This document shows, one piece after another, positions 38,752 to 48,284 of a DNA stretch of 64,000 nucleotides. Under the pieces are notes generated by a model, which was not told the origin of the DNA, did no database searches, and saw nothing but the letters and a program-made list of their open reading frames with translations. The first letter of the stretch is position 1. The number at the start of each line of letters is the position of its first letter. Source of the stretch: Selaginella moellendorffii. Lineage: Eukaryota; Plantae; Lycopodiophyta. Position numbers and translations under genes: made by a program. The stretch lies in the NCBI RefSeq assembly GCF_000143415.4, contig NW_003314322.1:942067-1006066 (forward strand). Reading direction: 5' to 3'.

Positions 38752-39639
38752 TCACTGGTTGAGCGGGATAACAACAATGGAGATATTGTCTCTACTCAAC
38801 TCGCTCGCCTTTCTAACAGCTTGATTCGCCACTGCCTGGCCCAATTCGGATGTTGTTGGATCAACCATCGCGGCTATGTCGCAAACCTCTTGCTCGCTCA
38901 TCCCTTCGTAGAGCCCATCCGAGGCCAACACGATAAACCCATCTTTGTTGGTGTTCGTCCACACCGACACGTCCGGGGTGGCAATCACGCCGTGGTTCTT
39001 GAGCGGAAGGTCCCCGATGGCGCGCGACATTGGAAAGTGGCCATCGATCACGCCGAAGCGTACCACGCCGCCCGCGGCCTCTATCCGGTGCTGCTCCGCG
39101 GGTAACTCCGGGTGGTGGTCGCTCGTTAGCACCTTGGCAACCAGCTTCTCGCCACCGTCGCGGACGCACGCGATCGCCCTCGAGTCGCCAACGTTGGCCA
39201 CGACCATGAACTCGTCCGTCACTACTGCTACGCACGCGGTGGATCCCGCTGGCCACCGGTTCTTGTAGGCTTCCTTGAGAAACGAGCTCTCCAGCTCCGC
39301 GATGGTCTTCTCCAGAGCCGCCTTGACAACTCCAGCGATTTTACTGCTAGAGGCATCCAGTGATCCCTGAAGGTTTGCGCGGAGCTTGGGCTCGAAGTTC
39401 TGGACGAGGAACTCGCTGGCCTGGGAGCCTATGTGGCCGTCGAAGACGGCGAAAACTCCCAGCCGGGTATCACCATGATCGGCGAGCAAGTTGGAGAGCG
39501 CTATTAGCCGATCTTCCTGGTATCTCCGGCGCCCTTGAATGCTCAGATGCCCACTGGACCACCCTGTTGATACTTCCACTGCTACAACACTACTCACCGC
39601 CAGCGCCAAGAGCGCCAAGAGCGCCAAGAGCTTCTTCAT
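38752..39639 (-). CDS. Intronless PP2C phosphatase with N-terminal signal peptide (copy 1, catalytic motifs intact)
   Basis: MKKLLALLALLALAVSSVVA; QGRRRYQEDR; VFDGH; GSTA; NVGDSRA; DHHP; SRAIGD; ASDGL; DNIS. Confidence 0.92.
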   Translation of the reverse strand: MKKLLALLALLALAVSSVVAVEVSTGWSSGHLSIQGRRRYQEDRLIALSNLLADHGDTRLGVFAVFDGHIGSQASEFLVQNFEPKLRANLQGSLDASSSKIAGVVKAALEKTIAELESSFLKEAYKNRWPAGSTACVAVVTDEFMVVANVGDSRAIACVRDGGEKLVAKVLTSDHHPELPAEQHRIEAAGGVVRFGVIDGHFPMSRAIGDLPLKNHGVIATPDVSVWTNTNKDGFIVLASDGLYEGMSEQEVCDIAAMVDPTTSELGQAVANQAVRKASELSRDNISIVVIPLNQ

Positions 39640-39825
39640 CCTTCCTTACCCTAGAAAAAGGAAGCTCTATATAATCCTTATAAACACCCGGTCACATGTG
39701 ACAAAAGACAACATAGATAAGGCGTGTCTTACCGGCCAGAAACTTGGGGGGCTTCTTGAGCGTCAAGGCGCCGCGCTGCTTCTCTAGTTCGGGTGAGAGA
39801 GATCGCAGGACTGGCACGCGGATCA

Positions 39826-41102
39826 ATGGCTACTTGTAACTGTGGGCTTGTGTGTTTGTTTCTTCTCTTCTCAATTCCCGTTAGCGCTAGCGTCTCTTTG
39901 AGCCTAGTCTCAAGATTTAACGCTTCTGCCAATGCCGGTGAAGCAAGTCAAGCGAGAGCAATTTTCCTCCTCTCCTCACTAGTTGATTCTTCTTTCTCTT
40001 CCTTGATCTCCGCTCAGAAGCTCAACTACGTAGCAAGTGAGTACCTTGTTGAGGTAGCGTTCGGATCCAGCAAGTCAAGCAAGAAGCTGATTTTCGACAC
40101 AGGAAGCACGTATATATGGACAAAGTGCTCCAGAAGCAACTTAGGATATCCACACGGCTCAAACACATTCAAGCCACTCAGTTGCGGCACCGACTGCCCA
40201 CTGCAATTTTGTAACATGGACAATGGTGGCTGTTTGTTCCAAGTTACATACCTCTCCAGTTACGTCATAGGTAAACTCGCTAGCTTTTATTAACACACAG
40301 TGCACAGTGCATTGAAATAGCATATGCAGGAGAAGGTGTACAAGACACCATGGAACTCGGGGATCTAACTCGAAGAATACGCTTTGGTTGTGGATATGCG
40401 TGGGGAATCAGTCACGAGTACGATGGAGTGTGTGGATTTGCAATGTCAAGACCATCGGTACCATCACAGCTTCAACCTTTAGCTAAGCAGCTTGGTATCA
40501 CTCGGTTTGCTACATGCTTCTACAAATCCGTGAGGGGCTCTCTCTTTCTCAACCACGATGCTGATAATGCCATGGTGAAACTGTCGAGCTACTCAGTGCC
40601 ACTGCTCAGGCTGCCGGGATCCTTCCCTGGGCCTCTTCCTTACTCGGTTGAAATCACAGGAATCGGTGTTGGTGGCCGGCTCACCTTCCAAACATCCCTA
40701 GGGAGTTTCATCATCTTCGACACAGGAGCTCGCTACACTGTTTTGGTTGAGGCTTTATTTGAGAAGGTAAAGGATTCTTTAGATGCAGCTCTTTCTACAA
40801 GTTATGATCGTGTCGAACAGCCCCATGACCAGATCTGCTATGTTTCTAAAGGTCAATCCTTCCCATTTCCTTCCCTTGATTTTCACTTGAAAACAGTCAC
40901 CATCTCACTCGCTCCAATTAACTATATGATGAGTGGCACCAACGGGGACCGAACTCACTGCCTTGCAATACGAAAGATCAGCGGCCTCTACGGAAATGCA
41001 GTTGGTATTTTTGGAAGTTACATGCAGCACAACATTCTCTTATACCACGACCTTGAGAAACAAGAGCTCTCGTTCGCGGCAGTGGATTGCTCTAAATTTT
41101 AG
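39826..41102 (+). CDS. Secreted A1-family aspartic protease (nepenthesin/xylanase-inhibitor fold)
   Basis: Signal peptide, two catalytic motifs (IFDTGS, IFDTGA), IFGSYMQHN...YHDLE....F...C. An intron at 40271-40329 joins the two ORFs in frame; a further in-frame intron may lie near 39940-40017. Confidence 0.9.
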
Positions 41103-41164
41103 TTAAGCTTCATTTATAAAGTCAATGTAATCGCTTGAAAACTATTGTCTTCAAGCTCCAATAA

Positions 41165-41405
41165 AGAGTGCTTCCCAGCTTCCTTTTCTACGGGCACAGA
41201 AAAAAGAAAACGTCAAACAAAGAAGAACACAGAGCCGACAGCATACTTTGACGGAGTCGATGTAGGTCCTGAGCTCCACTGCGTTCCCTTCCGACTCAGT
41301 AGGTGCAAGGAAAGGCTCGGTGGCGATCAGAGTAAGCTCGACTGCAAGCAAGACAGCAGCCTACTGCAGTCACGAGGGCTTGCCACAAGATTGGTGCTGG
41401 AAAAG
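41165..41405 (-). pseudogene. RAD9 exon fragment (third partial copy)
   Basis: TLIATEPFLAPTESEGNAVELRTYIDSVK is near-identical to RAD9 at about 31490-31580. Confidence 0.85.
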
Positions 41406-41489
41406 AAACAATGGAACTTTTTGCCATACCGCTCCCCGGAACACTCCGCAAGAATAACGCAGCAGCAAGGAGGCTGCTCAGGACAATAG

Positions 41490-43046
41490 AAGCATTGATT
41501 TGCTTGTCGGCATCATGTTCTCGAACTTGAGTGCACCTGGTGACTTGAAATGCCTGTTTAGACGAAACCAAAACTCGATACACGTTATTGAATTGTAACT
41601 GCGGAAAGCGGGTTGACAAGAACATACCAACAACCTCGCTTCATCCCCGGAGATGTTGCTTGAGCGCAAAACCCATCCACATTGCTTTCCTCGTTTGTAT
41701 CGGCAGCAATCCAGTTGCTCAAATATTTTCCAAACAGCTGTTGTGCACTACGCTCATCTGCATTGACAAATTAGCAGCTTAGCCTGAAACAACGAACACT
41801 GAAAAGCCTTCACCATTGGGCTGCACGACGTCGTCCTCTGTACCATTCCGGGATCCTTAGAGAAAAATGAAATACGTGAGGAACAAAAGCGGTTGATTCA
41901 TCGTAAAAACAAACTCATGTTGGTGGAACGGAAGCTCCTCGGTATATTTTACGAGGCTGTTGTTAGCAGAATCACTGGCTTGCGTCAAAATCGGCATTTG
42001 CGGCATCATCAACACTGAACTTTGGAGCAAGAAGAATTGGGCTGCAGGCAGGACGTGGATTTTGCAACTATAAAACATTAAGACAATGAAAGTAGTACCT
42101 TCCAGCTTTGTCGAAGAAAAGCTGCATATCAGCCTCCGAAACCTTGGCAAAAATTTATGCATGTAAAGGCCATCTAGATGTTAGGATTTCCTCTTGAGAT
42201 AAGTGAAGCACCTTGAGCTCCTTGACGCCGAACGTAACGTCAACTACGACTACAGTATGGAGATAGTATCGCAATTCTTCGGCGGGAGCAATCTGAGTGC
42301 GATAAAAAGGAAACGTCAAAGAAAGAAAAAGGATCTAGAGCCGAGCGAGCAGCAACATACCTTTGACGCGGTCGATGTAGCTCCTGATCTCCACTGCCTT
42401 GCCTTCGGACTCAGTAGGCGCAAGGAAAAGCTCGGTAGGGATCAGTAAGCTCGACTCCAAATTAGCTGAAGTCACGAGGCCTTGCCACCAGGGTGCTGGG
42501 AAAAGAGTATCGACACATGCTGCATTTCTGTGTCATTGTTGCAAGACGTTTCCTTAAAAGCTAGCGACAGAAGCTACGAGTCAAATCCAAGACGAACAAA
42601 TCCGCAATTACATACCATTCAAGCAGTCGATCGGAGGCATTGCTGTCCGACAGTGTGCTTGGTTGCGTCCGCAAGACAGTGCACACGGCCTTAAAAGACG
42701 ACATTAGCATCCGAGAAAGGAAAAAAACGGACAAGGCTCATACTTCCAGACGTACGCTGCACTGAGCGCTCGAGGAAGAGAGCTGCCTATCAAGGATGGA
42801 ATGTGATCGCAACGAACGCCGAGCGCGCCGAGGGGCACCTAGCAAAGAAAAAGAAATAGAGATTTTCTCTCACCTTGTCCAGCAGCGCCTCTAGAAGCCG
42901 ACGCGGGCCAGGCACGCGATGCAAGCCCCTGAAGGCATTGCGGCCAAGTGTACACTCCATTCTAGAGCAAAAAGGTGGTCTTGTATTCTTCTAATCGCAC
43001 TTTCGAGCATGCAAGAGTCCCACGCGGGCATCTTGCGCTTCCTAAG
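41490..43046 (-). pseudogene. Inverted, intron-retaining RAD9 pseudogene
   Basis: Reverse-complement similarity to 30740-32850 from the 5' flank through the 3' UTR (ATG at 42960, stop equivalent near 41641), with many small deletions and frameshifts. Confidence 0.9.
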
Positions 43047-43071
43047 TCTAGCCGATGTGATCATTGGAACC

Positions 43072-44631
43072 TCAACCTCCAGTAAAGTAAGCATGGTTGA
43101 GAGCTTGCATCGCTGTGATCCTATCCTCCTGAAACAGATTCAAACATCAGTAAGCGTGAAAAGTTTTAGTTTTCTTCCTACCGGGGACCATCGGAGGAGG
43201 CTCTGCACAAGCTCGAGCGCAAGCTTATTGGGGAAGCCGTGTGACAGAGCCGACTGATTCACGCATCGCGCAGTTTGCAGCGCCTAAGGAAGAAGAGAAA
43301 CAAGTAAACAAAAACGAAAACATCCAGTCAAGCCTCAAAGGTTTACCATTGTCTCCAGGAGCTCTCCAGCCAAGATCTTGTCCGGAGGGAAGACACAAAA
43401 GTTCGACAGCCCCAGCAAATAGGCCACGGAACGCGGTGGCATCCCGTAGTCAATTTGCCATGCCATTTGCATTTGCAGTGTCGTGGGAAGTATCGCTGAC
43501 CGGTTTCCCATGAAAACCTCTAGAAGCGTAACCCCGACCATCCACATGTCAAACCTGCAATTGGCATTTCAGTTTGATACCAAAATAAGAAAAAAACACT
43601 TACGCTTCCCCTTCATGGAGGTAAAACCTGTAGTCGTCGATGAATCGAGCCTCCGGTGCTGTGTAGCGCATGTCACTTTCACCATTCCTGTATAAAGAAT
43701 TTTCATCAATGAATTCTTGAGAACTACCTATACCTGAGAGGACCAATGCCTCTGTACAACGTTTTGCTGCTGGTCTGGTCGATTGCACTCCCAAGGTCGA
43801 TAATTCGAGTGTGTCCTCCTGCCACTAGTATGTTGTCTGGCTTGATGTCTCGATGGTAAATTCCACGCTCGTGGAGGGATGCAACACCTAGCAACTGCAA
43901 CAGCACAAGAAAACAAACACAAAGTGAGTCACACAACAAAAAAAAATAGAAGTAGAAAAGATTTAAAGCTAACCAGTTGAGTAACAAAGCTCCTCTTCTT
44001 GATGCTCCTCGTTTTCAACAACGATGTAGCAGTTTTTCCCTCATGGAAGAAGACCATGTAGATTTCATTGCCTTCTTGGAAAGCCTCCACGAACCTGTGA
44101 ACGTTTGCTAGAAATTTTCAAAGCAAAAGAAAAGACAAACCTCCCAACGTGGTCGAGAGAAGTATTGTAGCACGGGGGATCATACAATCCACAAGTCTCC
44201 GTCATCACCCAAGACTTCCGAAGTGATTGACCACATTGCAATTGTTCGCTCCTCAATCTAGAACCAAAATAAATCTCCCGATAAGCTGAAGCCAGTCGCA
44301 CCTCGTCCAACATCTAGAAGAAAAAAAAAAAAAACAAAGAAAGAATAAGTTGAAATTTTGACTTGCACCAATCCCTACTTACCATCACAACTTTGGCAAC
44401 ATAAGCCTGGGAGTCATTAGGATACCTTGCATTGTACACACGACCAAAGGCTCCTCTCCCAATCTCTCCCCCTACAATTTCCACGTCGAGGAAGAAGCTA
44501 CCCCACTCAGCCGCAAGGTTGACTTCATCGTCCATCTCTAGGCATCGATCCTCACCATGGCACACCACCTTCTTGGGCTCTGAAGCCGCGGGAAAGATCG
44601 CTAGGATCAGGAAAGCCAAGAGCAACAGCAT
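43072..44631 (-). CDS. Signal-peptide Ser/Thr protein kinase, 8 exons, catalytic motifs intact
   Basis: MLLLLAFLILAIFPAASE; GRGAFG; VAK; REIYFG; HRDIKPDN; IIDLGSA; YTAPE; FDMWMVG; GFPN.LAL.LV..LL.W.P; EDRIT..QAL.H.YF. All seven GT-AG introns are phase-compatible when spliced by hand. Confidence 0.88.
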
Positions 44632-44640
44632 GGCTGCAAA

Positions 44641-44987
44641 GTAACAATAAATGAGCCAATGCATCGCAAGTAACAATAAATGAGCCGATGCATCGCAAGT
44701 AACAATAAATGAGCCGATGCATCGCAAGAAAGAAGCTTTAAGATACCTCCCACACGCATTGCTTTGCTGCCGATGTTGATCTCCCGCACCATCGCGCGCC
44801 GCTAGCGCGCCGATCTGTAAGAAGCTCTGGATGTAAGGGAGAGTAGCTAGCAGCAAGAACAAAAAGAAGGAACCTTGCCGCGCTCGCCAATGTCGATCTC
44901 CCGCGCGCCGATCTATAAGAAGCTCTGGATGTAAGAGACAGTAGCTAGCAGCAAGAAAGAAAAGCAGGAACCTGGTGGCGCTCGCCT
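44641..44987. repeat. Tandem repeats upstream of the kinase: three 29-bp units plus two ~100-bp units
   Basis: GTAACAATAAATGAGCCGATGCATCGCAA x3 at 44641-44728; duplicated GATCT.TAAGAAGCTCTGGATGTAAG...GTAGCTAGCAGCAAGAA at about 44780-44987. Confidence 0.85.
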
Positions 44988-45165
44988 CGCGCTTTAGCCC
45001 CAAATAAACCCTTGTTACAAGTGCTAGATTCTCTGTCCTAAATATTTCTTGTCCGATCAAAATCGCTTACATGGTTCGTATGCTTCTTCCCGGGGCCCTT
45101 AAAAAAGTAACCTCGACTTCTATTAATTATAAAATTAACTAAGACATGTGAGTAATTAGACTAAA

Positions 45166-46056
45166 CTAAGTGGGGATAACAACAATGGAGATATTGTCTC
45201 TATAGCTCTCCTTTCTAGCAGCTTGAGCCTTTCTGGCAGCTTGATCGGCCACTGCCTGGCCCAACTCTGGTGTTTCTGGATCGACCGTCGCGGCTATGTC
45301 GCAAACCTCTTGCTCGCTTATCCCATCGTAGAGCCCATGCGAAGCCACCACGATAAACCCATCCATGGCGTTCCTCCACACCGTGACATCCGGGGTGCCA
45401 ATCACGCCGTAGTACCTCTTGAGCAGGAGGTCCCCGATGGAGCGGGACATTGGAAACCAGCCCTCGATCACGCCAGAGCGTACCTCGCTCCCCGCGGCCT
45501 CTAACCGCTGCCTCTCCATGGGCAACTCCGGGTGGTGGTCGCTCGTTAGCGCCTTGGCAACCAGCTTCTTGCCACCGTCGCGGACGCACGCGATCGCCCT
45601 CGAGTCGCCGACGTTGGCCATGACCATGAACTCGTCCGTCACCACCGCAACGCACGCGGTGGATCCCGCGTCCCACCACCGCTTCTCGTAGGCTTCCTTG
45701 AGAAACGACGTCTCCAGCTCCGCGATGGTCTTCTCCAGAGCCGCCTTGACAACACTAGCTTCGATTGAGGCATCCAGTGACCCCTGGAGGTTTGCGCGGA
45801 GCCTGGGCTCGAAGTTCTGGACGAGGAACTCGCTGGCCTGTGAGTCTGTGTGTCCGTCGAAGATGGCGAAAACACCCAGCCGGGTATCACCATCATCGAT
45901 GAGCAAGTTGGAGAGCGCTAGTACCCGATCTTCCTGGTGTCTCCGGCGCCCTTGAATGCTCAGATGCCCACTCGACCACCCTGTTGATACTTCCACTGCT
46001 ACAACACTACTCACCGCCAGCGCCAAGAGCGCCAGGAGCGCCAAGAGCTTCTTCAT
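45166..46056 (-). CDS. Intronless signal-peptide PP2C (copy 2, DG to HG substitution)
   Basis: Close paralog of 38752-39639 with the same signal peptide; ASHGLYD replaces ASDGLYE. The real start is probably the ATG at 46056. Confidence 0.9.
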   Translation of the reverse strand: MKKLLALLALLALAVSSVVAVEVSTGWSSGHLSIQGRRRHQEDRVLALSNLLIDDGDTRLGVFAIFDGHTDSQASEFLVQNFEPRLRANLQGSLDASIEASVVKAALEKTIAELETSFLKEAYEKRWWDAGSTACVAVVTDEFMVMANVGDSRAIACVRDGGKKLVAKALTSDHHPELPMERQRLEAAGSEVRSGVIEGWFPMSRSIGDLLLKRYYGVIGTPDVTVWRNAMDGFIVVASHGLYDGISEQEVCDIAATVDPETPELGQAVADQAARKAQAARKESYRDNISIVVIPT

Positions 46057-46117
46057 CTTTACCCTATGACAAAAGGAAGAGCTTTGGTCTCTTTCTATAG
46101 TCTCAAGGAAAAAGGTT

Positions 46118-48284
46118 TCAGCCATGAGCTTCGAAACATCCACACTTGACCTTGATCGTTTCACTGTTTCTCACCACCTCGCCCTGGATTATCCCTCCCA
46201 CGAACTTCCCAATCACCAGCTGAGACACCATCACTACATTCCCAGGATCCTGGAAAAAGAAAAAACAAAAAGAATGGATTAGTTGATCGCCTATACTAGA
46301 AGAGAACTTGGGCGCTTCTTACTTGTGTCCTGTAACTCCGGATCCCCATGAGACCATAGTTCCTGGATCGCGTCCAGTGGTGGTGCTTGAATTTGTAGTC
46401 GTTTCCCAGAACGCCCAGCCGCCCAGCCGCGCGCATGAAATAGTACGCCGGCTTTGGCAGCGGCCGATTGGCGATGGCGCTCGTCGTGAACTGGTTGAAG
46501 AGCACTTGATCCCCGCGAAAGATTTGAGAGTGGCCTCCGCAGTGGACATCACCTGTGGATCTCTGTGAGAAAACCAAACGAACAAGCAAAGAATTTGAGG
46601 AAGACTTCCTACCTCCCAGGACCATGACCTCTCTCCGCCCGCTCTCCTTCCAATTCACCAGCGCTTCGATCATCCTCGTCTGCTCCTTGCGATGTATGTC
46701 CGCCGACCAGTGCCCCCGGAAATCCACGAGCCGCGGCACATTCTTCCCGGCGGCATCGGTGATGTTCGGCTCCAGGAAGACGAGCGGCGCCGGGGAGCAA
46801 ACCAGCAGCACGCGTACATCCTCGAAGAGATCCCCCGGGCGGAGAGCCTGGTCGATGTCGGTCCACTGCGGGCTGCCGAGGTAGGGGAACTCGTCGCCCT
46901 TGACTCGCTGGAACGATCGGCAGCCGCGAACATCCAAGAACATAAGCCCCAGCCCGCCAACTACGTGGAAGTGGTGGTCCTGCACGGACGGCCAGGATTT
47001 GCCGAGTTCTTCCGCAAATCATGGAACCACGTACCTTGGTCAGCTTGTTGAGCTTCCTGAAATCGATGTCGCGGTCCAATTGGCGCTGGTACTCCAGGTA
47101 GGCGATCCACGCGCCGCGCGCGATGAAGAAATCGAGGCATTCCGGGTCCCAGTCGGCCTCGAGGTCGGCCCAATTGTCGCGGATCTCGTGGTCGTCGTAG
47201 ATCATGAGATTGGGGCAATTCGCCAGGCAGCGGGCGGTGGGGGGGTGCCGCCACGTCTCGCGGTACACCTCGCGGTACGCTTCGCGGACTTCCTCCTCTT
47301 TGGTGTGCCACAGATGCCGTGGGACGTCCTTCATGATCTCTTCCTTGCACAGCCGGAATCGATCGGAGCAGCGGTCGACATGGTTTTCCTTGTCCATCAA
47401 TTTATCGCCATCGCCATACACCTGGGAGAAAAGAGAAAGAGAAATTTCTTAAGAACACGACAAGAACTTAAGAACAGGGGAATGGAGGGATCGTTTAATG
47501 GAACAGCAATCTTAGATCCAACCGTGCAATCCTTGAAGGAAAGAAAGGAAATCGAGGACCCAACACAGGAATTCTGGACAAAAGCCGCCGTGAGAATGGA
47601 TCGATCTCTCACCTGGTCGCCGAGATGGAGGACCAAGTCCACGCTCCCAGCCTCGATGTTCTTGGCGAGGTCCGCCCACAGGTCCGAGTGAATGGGGATT
47701 TCCATCTGGGTGATGAAGATCTTGTTGCAGCTCACCACTCCAACATTGACACGATCCCACAGCTCCTCCTTCCTGGGAAACGTGACGAAGCTACTCCTGG
47801 TCACGAGATCAGATTTGCATCCCTCCAGCTCCACCAGGTAGCGGCACCCGGGGCTGAGCTCCAAGAACTCAAACGCCACTGGCCGATTCGCGGGCAACCT
47901 CTTCTCCACCTTCAAGCTCCTCCCCTGCTTGCTCTTCGATTTTCCCGGCAGCGCTGGATCTTGATCCCCTTCCTTGGGAATCGCGCTCGCCTGATCTTGC
48001 GGAGCGGGAGCATCCTTCTTCGCTCTTCGCCGACGCCTCCTGGATTTCTGGAGCAGCTGCCGCGACCGCAACACGTCGGCGGCATCCTCGATCTGGGTGA
48101 GCGAGACCGTGATCCGGGCCTCGCGATCGATTTCCAGCAGGATCCTGGCGCTCGTTGACGTTACCTTGCCAATCACTGGCCCGATCACCACATTGGCGTC
48201 CTCCTGGGATTTCTTCCTCGCATTTCGCTCCTCGCCCAGCAATTTGTTCACTGCCCCGGCGACCTTCTTCCTCCACGCGCTCAT
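46118..48284 (-). CDS. PhoD-like (alkaline phosphatase D) metallophosphatase, 5 exons
   Basis: IGPVIGKVT...ARILLE; VSCN; LHLGDQ|VYGD; MIYDDHEIRDNW; GG|DVH; RNYG. Last exon DPGNVV...AHG*. No signal peptide seen. Confidence 0.85.

Follow-up and report, generated by a model that had tools for sequence, protein, structure and literature searches.

A divergent Selaginella moellendorffii paralogue of the plant PP2C-kinase fusion gene with its catalytic halves in two apparently separate neighbouring genes

The genes considered here, a protein phosphatase of the PP2C family and a protein kinase, lie next to each other in a window of 64,000 nucleotides (the whole stretch of DNA that was analysed) of Selaginella moellendorffii scaffold GL377626.1, assembly GCA_000143415.2. 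In the order of the minus strand the PP2C (46056-45166) is followed by a spacer of 534 nt and then by the kinase (44631-43072), and this is the order of the two domains in the plant fusion family of the At3g63340/At3g63330 (PP2C51) type, where signal peptide, PP2C, linker, and kinase form one protein. A first-pass annotation of this DNA had proposed both genes, the spacer, and a set of motifs, together with the same-strand arrangement in the order of the fusion, and all of these were found where it had placed them. The features are as follows.

45166-46056, minus strand: PP2Ca, the PP2C beside the kinase; intronless open reading frame of 296 amino acids with a Pfam PP2C match and a hydrophobic N-terminal leader
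44632-45165, minus strand: spacer from the PP2C stop codon to the kinase ATG, 534 nt
44383-44631, minus strand: kinase exon 1, with the ATG, the leader MLLLLAFLILAIFPAAS, the GRGAFG glycine loop, and the VAK lysine; an RNA contig ends exactly at 44383
44141-44313, minus strand: kinase exon 2, with the REIYFG helix-C motif; junctions of model P0242
43974-44094, minus strand: kinase exon 3, FVEAFQEGNEIYMVFFHEG...
43734-43894, minus strand: kinase exon 4, with the YHRDIKPDN catalytic loop and DLG; Pfam Pkinase match at E 3.1e-11 for this exon alone; RNA joint 43686/43733
43604-43687, minus strand: kinase exon 5, with the TAPE motif; RNA joint 43552/43602
43347-43554, minus strand: kinase exon 6, with DMWMVGV and the family-specific AYLL..FCVF segment; RNA joint 43282/43346
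43182-43283, minus strand: kinase exon 7, GFPNKLALELVQSLLRWSP; RNA joint 43127/43181
43072-43128, minus strand: kinase exon 8, EDRITAMQALNHAYFTGG and the stop codon

PP2Ca matches the Pfam PP2C profile (PF00481) with E 5.8e-43 and terminates at 45168-45166, where the last conserved stretch DNISIVV is followed by the three residues IPT and the stop codon. Both the absence of introns and the stop of its own, as claimed in the first-pass annotation, hold, the 296-residue frame being uninterrupted and expressed RNA reading straight through that stop. The protein has an identical entry in NCBI nr, where it is annotated as a separate product. The kinase is already named At3g63330-like in RefSeq. The signal peptides of both halves were judged by a hydrophobicity heuristic only (Kyte-Doolittle): the N-terminus of PP2Ca, MKKLLALLALLALAVSSVVA, is strongly hydrophobic (best 11-residue mean 3.1) and is continued by SIQGRRRHQEDR, in which QGRRxxQEDR replaces the usual MED motif, as in P0018, P0007, P0011, and others; the QGRRRHQEDR of PP2Ca corresponds to QGRRRYQEDR in true fusion proteins.

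According to three-frame translation the kinase gene comprises 8 exons with 1155 nt in total (384 codons and the stop), separated by 7 GT-AG introns of 46 to 79 nt, the number of introns counted previously. Introns 1 to 3 are those of model P0242 and the junctions of exons 4 to 8 those of P0239, and for introns 4 to 7 the joints were observed in RNA, either in contigs or in reads. An independent start and a strongly hydrophobic N-terminus (best 11-residue mean 3.5) characterise the kinase, which agrees, by the same heuristic, with the earlier proposal of a separate signal peptide. In the exon translations every catalytic motif of the Ser/Thr kinase set is kept (GRGAFG, VAK, REIYFG, YHRDIKPDN, DLG, and TAPE), and the product is probably an active kinase, either within the secretory pathway or extracellular. 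Both public models of this gene (43072-44792 and down to 41122) are wrong, in different ways, and need correction: RefSeq XP_024545080.1 (P0239, 326 amino acids) reads exon 2 in the wrong frame and drops exon 3, and GenBank SELMODRAFT_423435 (P0242, 649 amino acids) leaves out the exon with the catalytic loop as well as the final exon and extends into unrelated downstream sequence. Both also contain a further upstream exon, which found no support in the RNA data examined.

44746-44792, minus strand: coding exon of both public models, MVREINIGSKAMRVG, spliced to the acceptor at 44633; position 44792 is the GenBank gene start

The two domains are apparently not joined into one polypeptide by the conserved linker, since the stop codon at 45168-45166 and the 534-nt spacer lie between them. 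The spacer carries a pair of 84-bp direct repeats (44805-44888 and 44903-44986, 89% identical) and three copies of a 29-bp unit at about 44638-44726, and the kinase frame stays open upstream to about 45060 (open reading frame 44314-45060). In this frame the 29-bp unit reads ASFLRCIGSF; as a possible echo of the FLRLIGS/FLSSIGSI linker motif it was the best tblastn match and was rejected as not significant (E 0.06-0.24 in a tiny database).

Transcription was followed with two raw stranded RNA runs and two run contig sets mapped over 42600-46400, where all reads fit minus-strand genes. In the contig sets the depth over the PP2C is about 23 to 100, and an RNA contig passes its stop codon unspliced and ends at 45148. 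Within the spacer none of the four runs has any depth over 44759-45139, and over 44632-44758 the depth is essentially nil (0.03, run X24), while the kinase reaches a depth of only about 1 to 8 and its mRNA 5' end is uncovered. At this kinase depth no joint from PP2C to kinase was detected in the four runs, and none of the last 135 PP2C codons offers a phase-1 GT donor for the acceptor at 44633. These data are most simply, if not conclusively, read as two transcription units.

It is very improbable that the locus is still one gene, in which a spliced transcript joins PP2C and kinase and the appearance of two genes is an annotation artefact. The precedent for such an arrangement is in Arabidopsis, where At3g63340 (PP2C) and At3g63330 (kinase) are annotated as neighbours and one full-length chimeric cDNA has an open reading frame across both (PMC2695776); this survey was also the only mention of At3g63330 found in the literature searched. 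The open kinase frame, the acceptor two nt before the kinase ATG, and the uncovered mRNA 5' end would suit the same arrangement in Selaginella. Nevertheless, the RNA contig beyond the PP2C stop is unspliced and ends about 20 nt on, spacer depth and joint are missing despite a PP2C depth of 23 to 60, no suitable donor is available, and a leader placed directly after the kinase ATG is sensible only with an independent start.

The fusion family is well represented in public proteomes. With the PP2C as query, an exhaustive HMMER search yielded sequences of 870 to 1106 amino acids with a PP2C and then a Pkinase domain, and a profile search with the kinase halves added more fusions in angiosperms, Taxus, ferns, Sphagnum, the streptophyte alga Chlorokybus, and the chlorophyte Coccomyxa, RefSeq isoforms named "probable inactive protein kinase At3g63330" being among the matches. 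The PP2C is placed first in all fusions found. Because fusions occur from green algae to angiosperms, the fused form is, as judged from these sequences, ancestral in green plants. A side observation concerns the fused gene of Sphagnum balticum, where the intron pattern is reversed: PP2C and linker have twelve introns, and the kinase (amino acids 698-1106, after the conserved ILKRIL| intron) is one exon.

S. moellendorffii itself has an intact fused gene on other scaffolds (XP_024523224.1, P0055, 979 amino acids; allele XP_024520908.1), which maps to its locus with 19 exons, canonical introns, and one open frame. The first-pass annotation had proposed the apparent fission of a fusion gene in place, and as a split of the genome's own fusion gene this could not be maintained, an orthologue split in place being ruled out by the intact gene in the same genome. 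Because of that gene the window locus is, on sequence comparison, an extra divergent paralogue of the fused gene.

Membership of both halves in the PP2C51/At3g63330 family, also proposed at first, was confirmed by the tree for the PP2C and by profile, motifs, and introns for the kinase. In the IQ-TREE analysis (mixture model) PP2Ca falls, with support 97/86, into a clade of 24 rows that contains all land-plant fusion PP2Cs and PP2C50/51-like proteins plus six short Selaginella PP2Cs, the algal fusion PP2Cs being just outside. The kinase was queried exon by exon and with the public partial models P0239 and P0242 rather than as a joined spliced model. A family kinase profile built without the window rows gave 121.9 bits for the incomplete P0239 and 118.5 and 30.9 bits for two complementary partial models, against at most 96 for generic kinases, and its match spans the C-lobe insert. 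The motifs that the first-pass annotation had named proved to be real and common to true fusion proteins: REIYFG of the window kinase stands against REKYFG of the fusions, HVGRFVEAF..EIYMVFFHEG against HIARYIESF..EIWLVFRHEG, and RIIDLGSAID..LY..GP against RVIDFGSGID..LYGPHGP, while GFPN..L.LV..LL.W.PEDR is found in both.

The intron positions were compared, as had been suggested, with those of fused genes, and five of the seven kinase introns agree. Eleven positions in the kinase region are common to the fused gene of Selaginella (P0055) and that of the angiosperm Dionaea (P0018), and the window kinase matches both in position and phase at intron 1 (phase 0, three residues past the VAK lysine), intron 3 (phase 0, at QL|LL before the HRD loop), intron 4 (phase 2, in GPL(R)), intron 5 (phase 2, in the Ala codon just before FDMW), and intron 7 (phase 0, at P|EDR). 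Intron 6 (phase 0) is no more than three residues away from an ancestral intron in a poorly alignable stretch and is probably the same one, and intron 2 (phase 2, in HVG(R)) is unique to the window kinase and absent from P0055 and P0018. Four to five ancestral introns are missing. The number of matches expected by chance was estimated as about 0.06 (7 x 11 / 1260 positions). Chance adjacency of unrelated genes is ruled out by trees, motifs, and intron positions together.

The history favoured here, held with a confidence somewhat on the positive side, is that the locus is a Selaginella-specific, fast-evolving paralogue of the ancient fused gene, the two catalytic halves of which are now separate genes. 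The family membership of both halves, the gene structures, the survival of the fused gene, and the lack of spacer RNA are shown by the data, whereas the order of events, the localisation, and the enzyme activity are inferred. The order would be as follows. The fused gene would have been duplicated as DNA, and therefore the kinase would have kept ancestral introns. The linker would then have been lost or have degenerated, and the PP2C half would have gained a stop, while the kinase half would have gained a start and a hydrophobic leader that returned it to the secretory pathway. Finally, all introns of the short PP2C would have disappeared, for which recombination between the gene and its cDNA is the simplest route, and the gene would have been copied locally and to other sites. 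The canonical fused gene was retained, as was a second local PP2C with its SDG motif intact. Outside S. moellendorffii, word-based protein searches gave no relatives: the PP2C brought up Selaginella copies and weak matches only, and the kinase part of P0242 returned P0242 itself only, which left no close relatives for dating the event.

38752-39639, minus strand: PP2Cb, second intronless PP2C, 295 amino acids; SDG kept; slower evolving

The PP2C side of the locus is complicated by this second copy. PP2Ca and PP2Cb share 87% DNA identity in the coding sequence only, the similarity beginning about 20 nt before the ATG and stopping a few nt before the stop codon, with a synonymous divergence (Ks) of 0.16-0.20 and a ratio of nonsynonymous to synonymous divergence (Ka/Ks) of 0.64. 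The leaders of the two proteins are almost identical. At the DNA level the first approximately 200 nt, which cover leader and N-terminus (45860-46079 versus 39440-39664), are nearly identical and the remainder about 85%, and this near-identity suggests recent gene conversion of the 5' part. In the PP2C tree both belong to a clade of six short PP2Cs, all from S. moellendorffii (P0001, P0277, P0284, P0005, P0006, and P0053; support 92/95). Introns are absent from P0001, P0277, P0005, and P0006; the single annotated intron of P0053 is at a site not common to the PP2C introns of the fused genes, which makes it uninformative as a marker of history, and it was set aside for that purpose.

Several observations weigh against the favoured history. 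The PP2C domain of the fused genes has four conserved introns and PP2Ca has none of the four, against five or six of eleven kept in the kinase, and this one-sided loss is explained as well by a retrocopy as by later loss; the marks of a retrogene are confined to the intronless state relative to a four-intron parent, no poly(A) tract or flanking duplication being visible, though such marks could have decayed. The two local PP2Cs are young duplicates with similarity ending at the edges of the coding sequence, and the older site could be that of either one, which limits the case for direct inheritance of the PP2C-kinase order from the fusion. With the ancestral introns lost and the local pair both young and confined to coding sequence, the PP2C may therefore have reached its place ahead of the kinase secondarily. 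No family kinase lies beside the other short PP2C loci (P0005, P0006, and P0053), and no linker relics were significant in the spacer by tblastn with five fusion linkers. Rare fused transcripts could have been missed at the low kinase depth. Both halves are basal and long-branched, the kinase standing at the base of its family on a very long branch, which makes a shared history hard to test closely. In favour of the proposed history, approximately unbiased (AU) tests did not reject a sister position to the Selaginella fusion for the short PP2C clade (p 0.20) and did not quite reject it for the kinase (p 0.08). A tblastn search for kinase relics near the other short PP2C loci was also negative, at a low sensitivity that missed an annotated generic kinase as well.

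Another explanation, which is unlikely but should be taken seriously, is that a kinase-only partial duplicate and a short intronless PP2C, derived from a PP2C-only retrocopy, met later and that no fission occurred in place. Either a local duplication of the PP2C or its retroposition could have brought this about, and selection for co-regulation may have favoured the result. This explanation would account for the fact that all five Selaginella loci of short PP2Cs are intronless or nearly so against four introns in the fused PP2C half, for the limits of the PP2Ca/PP2Cb similarity (coding sequence and about 20 nt upstream) at Ks of about 0.2, and for the position of PP2Ca 61 nt past the stop of a PhoD-like gene, within the transcribed 3' region of that gene. 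On the other hand, the chance that any of about five PP2C loci would be the next gene upstream of the sole family kinase on its strand was estimated as about 1 in 10,000 for approximately 22,000 genes, neither a poly(A) remnant nor a target-site duplication is visible at PP2Ca, and both PP2Cs lie on the same strand less than 7 kb from the kinase, so that their common ancestor must have been in this neighbourhood as well.

Upstream on the minus strand, the PhoD-like gene has its stop at 46120-46118, only 61 nt ahead of the PP2Ca ATG. In RNA contigs (region 45940-46400) its last exons are joined to the first 117 nt of PP2Ca, and RNA depth declines steadily from the PhoD-like gene through PP2Ca, so that most of the PP2Ca transcript may be a 3' extension of the PhoD mRNA.

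In a catalytic respect the PP2C half differs from all its relatives. The third metal-binding motif of PP2Ca is SHG (45331-45339), alone among 11 relatives with SDG in all others, and the site of the Asp to His change was confirmed by alignment to rice PP2C06 (chain 4oic_B); the motifs ED, DGH, and DN are kept, and DGHGG is DGHTD. PP2Ca therefore lacks the full set of conserved metal-binding Asp residues, SDG being kept in PP2Cb. RNA contigs from two studies cover the region, SHG included, without mismatch. In the PP2C tree the terminal branch of PP2Ca is about four times longer than that of PP2Cb (0.17 versus about 0.04), and the Pfam PP2C scores are 148 and 179 bits, respectively. Because His replaces a metal-binding Asp and the gene evolves fast, PP2Ca may be a weak or dead phosphatase, and the earlier description of the two products as independently secreted enzymes is doubtful for the PP2C.

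Taken further, these facts would mean that PP2Ca is a decaying copy, that only the kinase and perhaps PP2Cb are functional, and that the locus amounts to a kinase gene beside a moribund PP2C; this is possible, although on balance rather unlikely. Such decay would agree with the solitary SHG, the DGHTD sequence, the Ka/Ks of 0.64 relative to PP2Cb together with the long branch, the reduced Pfam score, and an RNA depth that falls away from the PhoD-like gene as in a 3' extension of it. It is opposed by the intact frame of 296 codons, by the presence of the gene without mismatch in RNA assemblies from two studies, and by a leader kept nearly identical to that of PP2Cb; moreover, His can bind metal ions.

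The surroundings of the favoured split pair contain several further features. On the plus strand at 39793-41102 there are two open reading frames with an N-terminal hydrophobic leader, which match the TAXi_N, TAXi_C, and aspartyl protease families and have no gene call in the GenBank annotation of the assembly. Between this protease-like gene and the kinase a repeated element is present in two copies (41145-41489 and 42203-42448) with similar open reading frames on both strands (...FLAPTESEG.AVE.R.YID...). Immediately downstream of the kinase, at 42600-42980 on the minus strand, another gene is expressed, whose reads have loose ends and a 12-letter replacement at the joint and look like a divergent allele or paralogue. 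A speculative and quite doubtful proposal is that the split pair is part of a lineage-specific secretory-pathway cluster made up of the PhoD-like phosphatase, the two leader-bearing PP2Cs, the leader-bearing kinase, and the TAXi/aspartyl-protease-like protein. If this were true, a leader regained after fission would show that the PP2C-kinase family must work in the secretory pathway or the cell wall space; a conserved system by which plants phosphorylate proteins in the lumen or extracellularly would then be indicated.

The interest of the locus arises from the conservation of the fusion, which has been kept with its secretory leader from chlorophyte and streptophyte algae to flowering plants. 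A split copy shows that the phosphatase and kinase activities are separable, the new leader of the kinase half suggests that localisation matters, and both domains become available in short, easily expressed versions for assays. In addition, it offers a clean case in which to study gene fission: the parent survives, intron loss is confined to one side, and the other side has acquired a new start.

The closest known systems are At3g63340 (AtPP2C51)/At3g63330 and the fused orthologues (XP_024523224.1, Sphagnum CAM6025619.1, and Dionaea GAB2282328.1), which have in common with the window pair the PP2C subfamily with its leader and QGRRxxQEDR, the kinase subfamily with its motifs, C-lobe insert, and five intron positions, and the same order and strand. 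The Arabidopsis locus also has, like the window, a tandem second PP2C, the duplicate At3g63320 (PMC2612031). They differ in that fused genes have a linker of about 150 amino acids in Selaginella and up to about 250 elsewhere, whereas the window has a stop and a 534-nt untranscribed spacer; the window PP2C is intronless, unlike the fused family; and the window kinase starts independently with a leader of its own, has about 100 residues fewer, and is without the inserts of the family. Both halves have diverged strongly: compared with the fused gene that this genome also carries, the PP2C is 37% and the kinase 31% identical.

Two other comparisons are more distant. An Arabidopsis protein, At2g40860, combines protein kinase and PP2C domains, and KAPP (At5g19280) is a PP2C in kinase signalling (PMC2612031). 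Both resemble the window family in the coupling of a PP2C to kinase signalling but belong to another family, KAPP having no kinase domain and a secretory leader being described for neither. The domain order of At2g40860 is different from that of the window family as well.

Gene fission after duplication is a known process, and the Drosophila "monkey king" family reportedly arose by duplication followed by complementary degeneration. The likeness is that a multi-domain parent was kept and a duplicate resolved into genes each with part of the parent; the difference is that the parts in the window are adjacent at one locus, one half is intron-free, and the downstream half needed a new targeting leader. 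The novelty lies in a retained paralogue with split architecture, in the loss of introns from one half only, in a leader gained anew, and in the change to His; the locus is a tidy example of gene splitting rather than a new kind of system.

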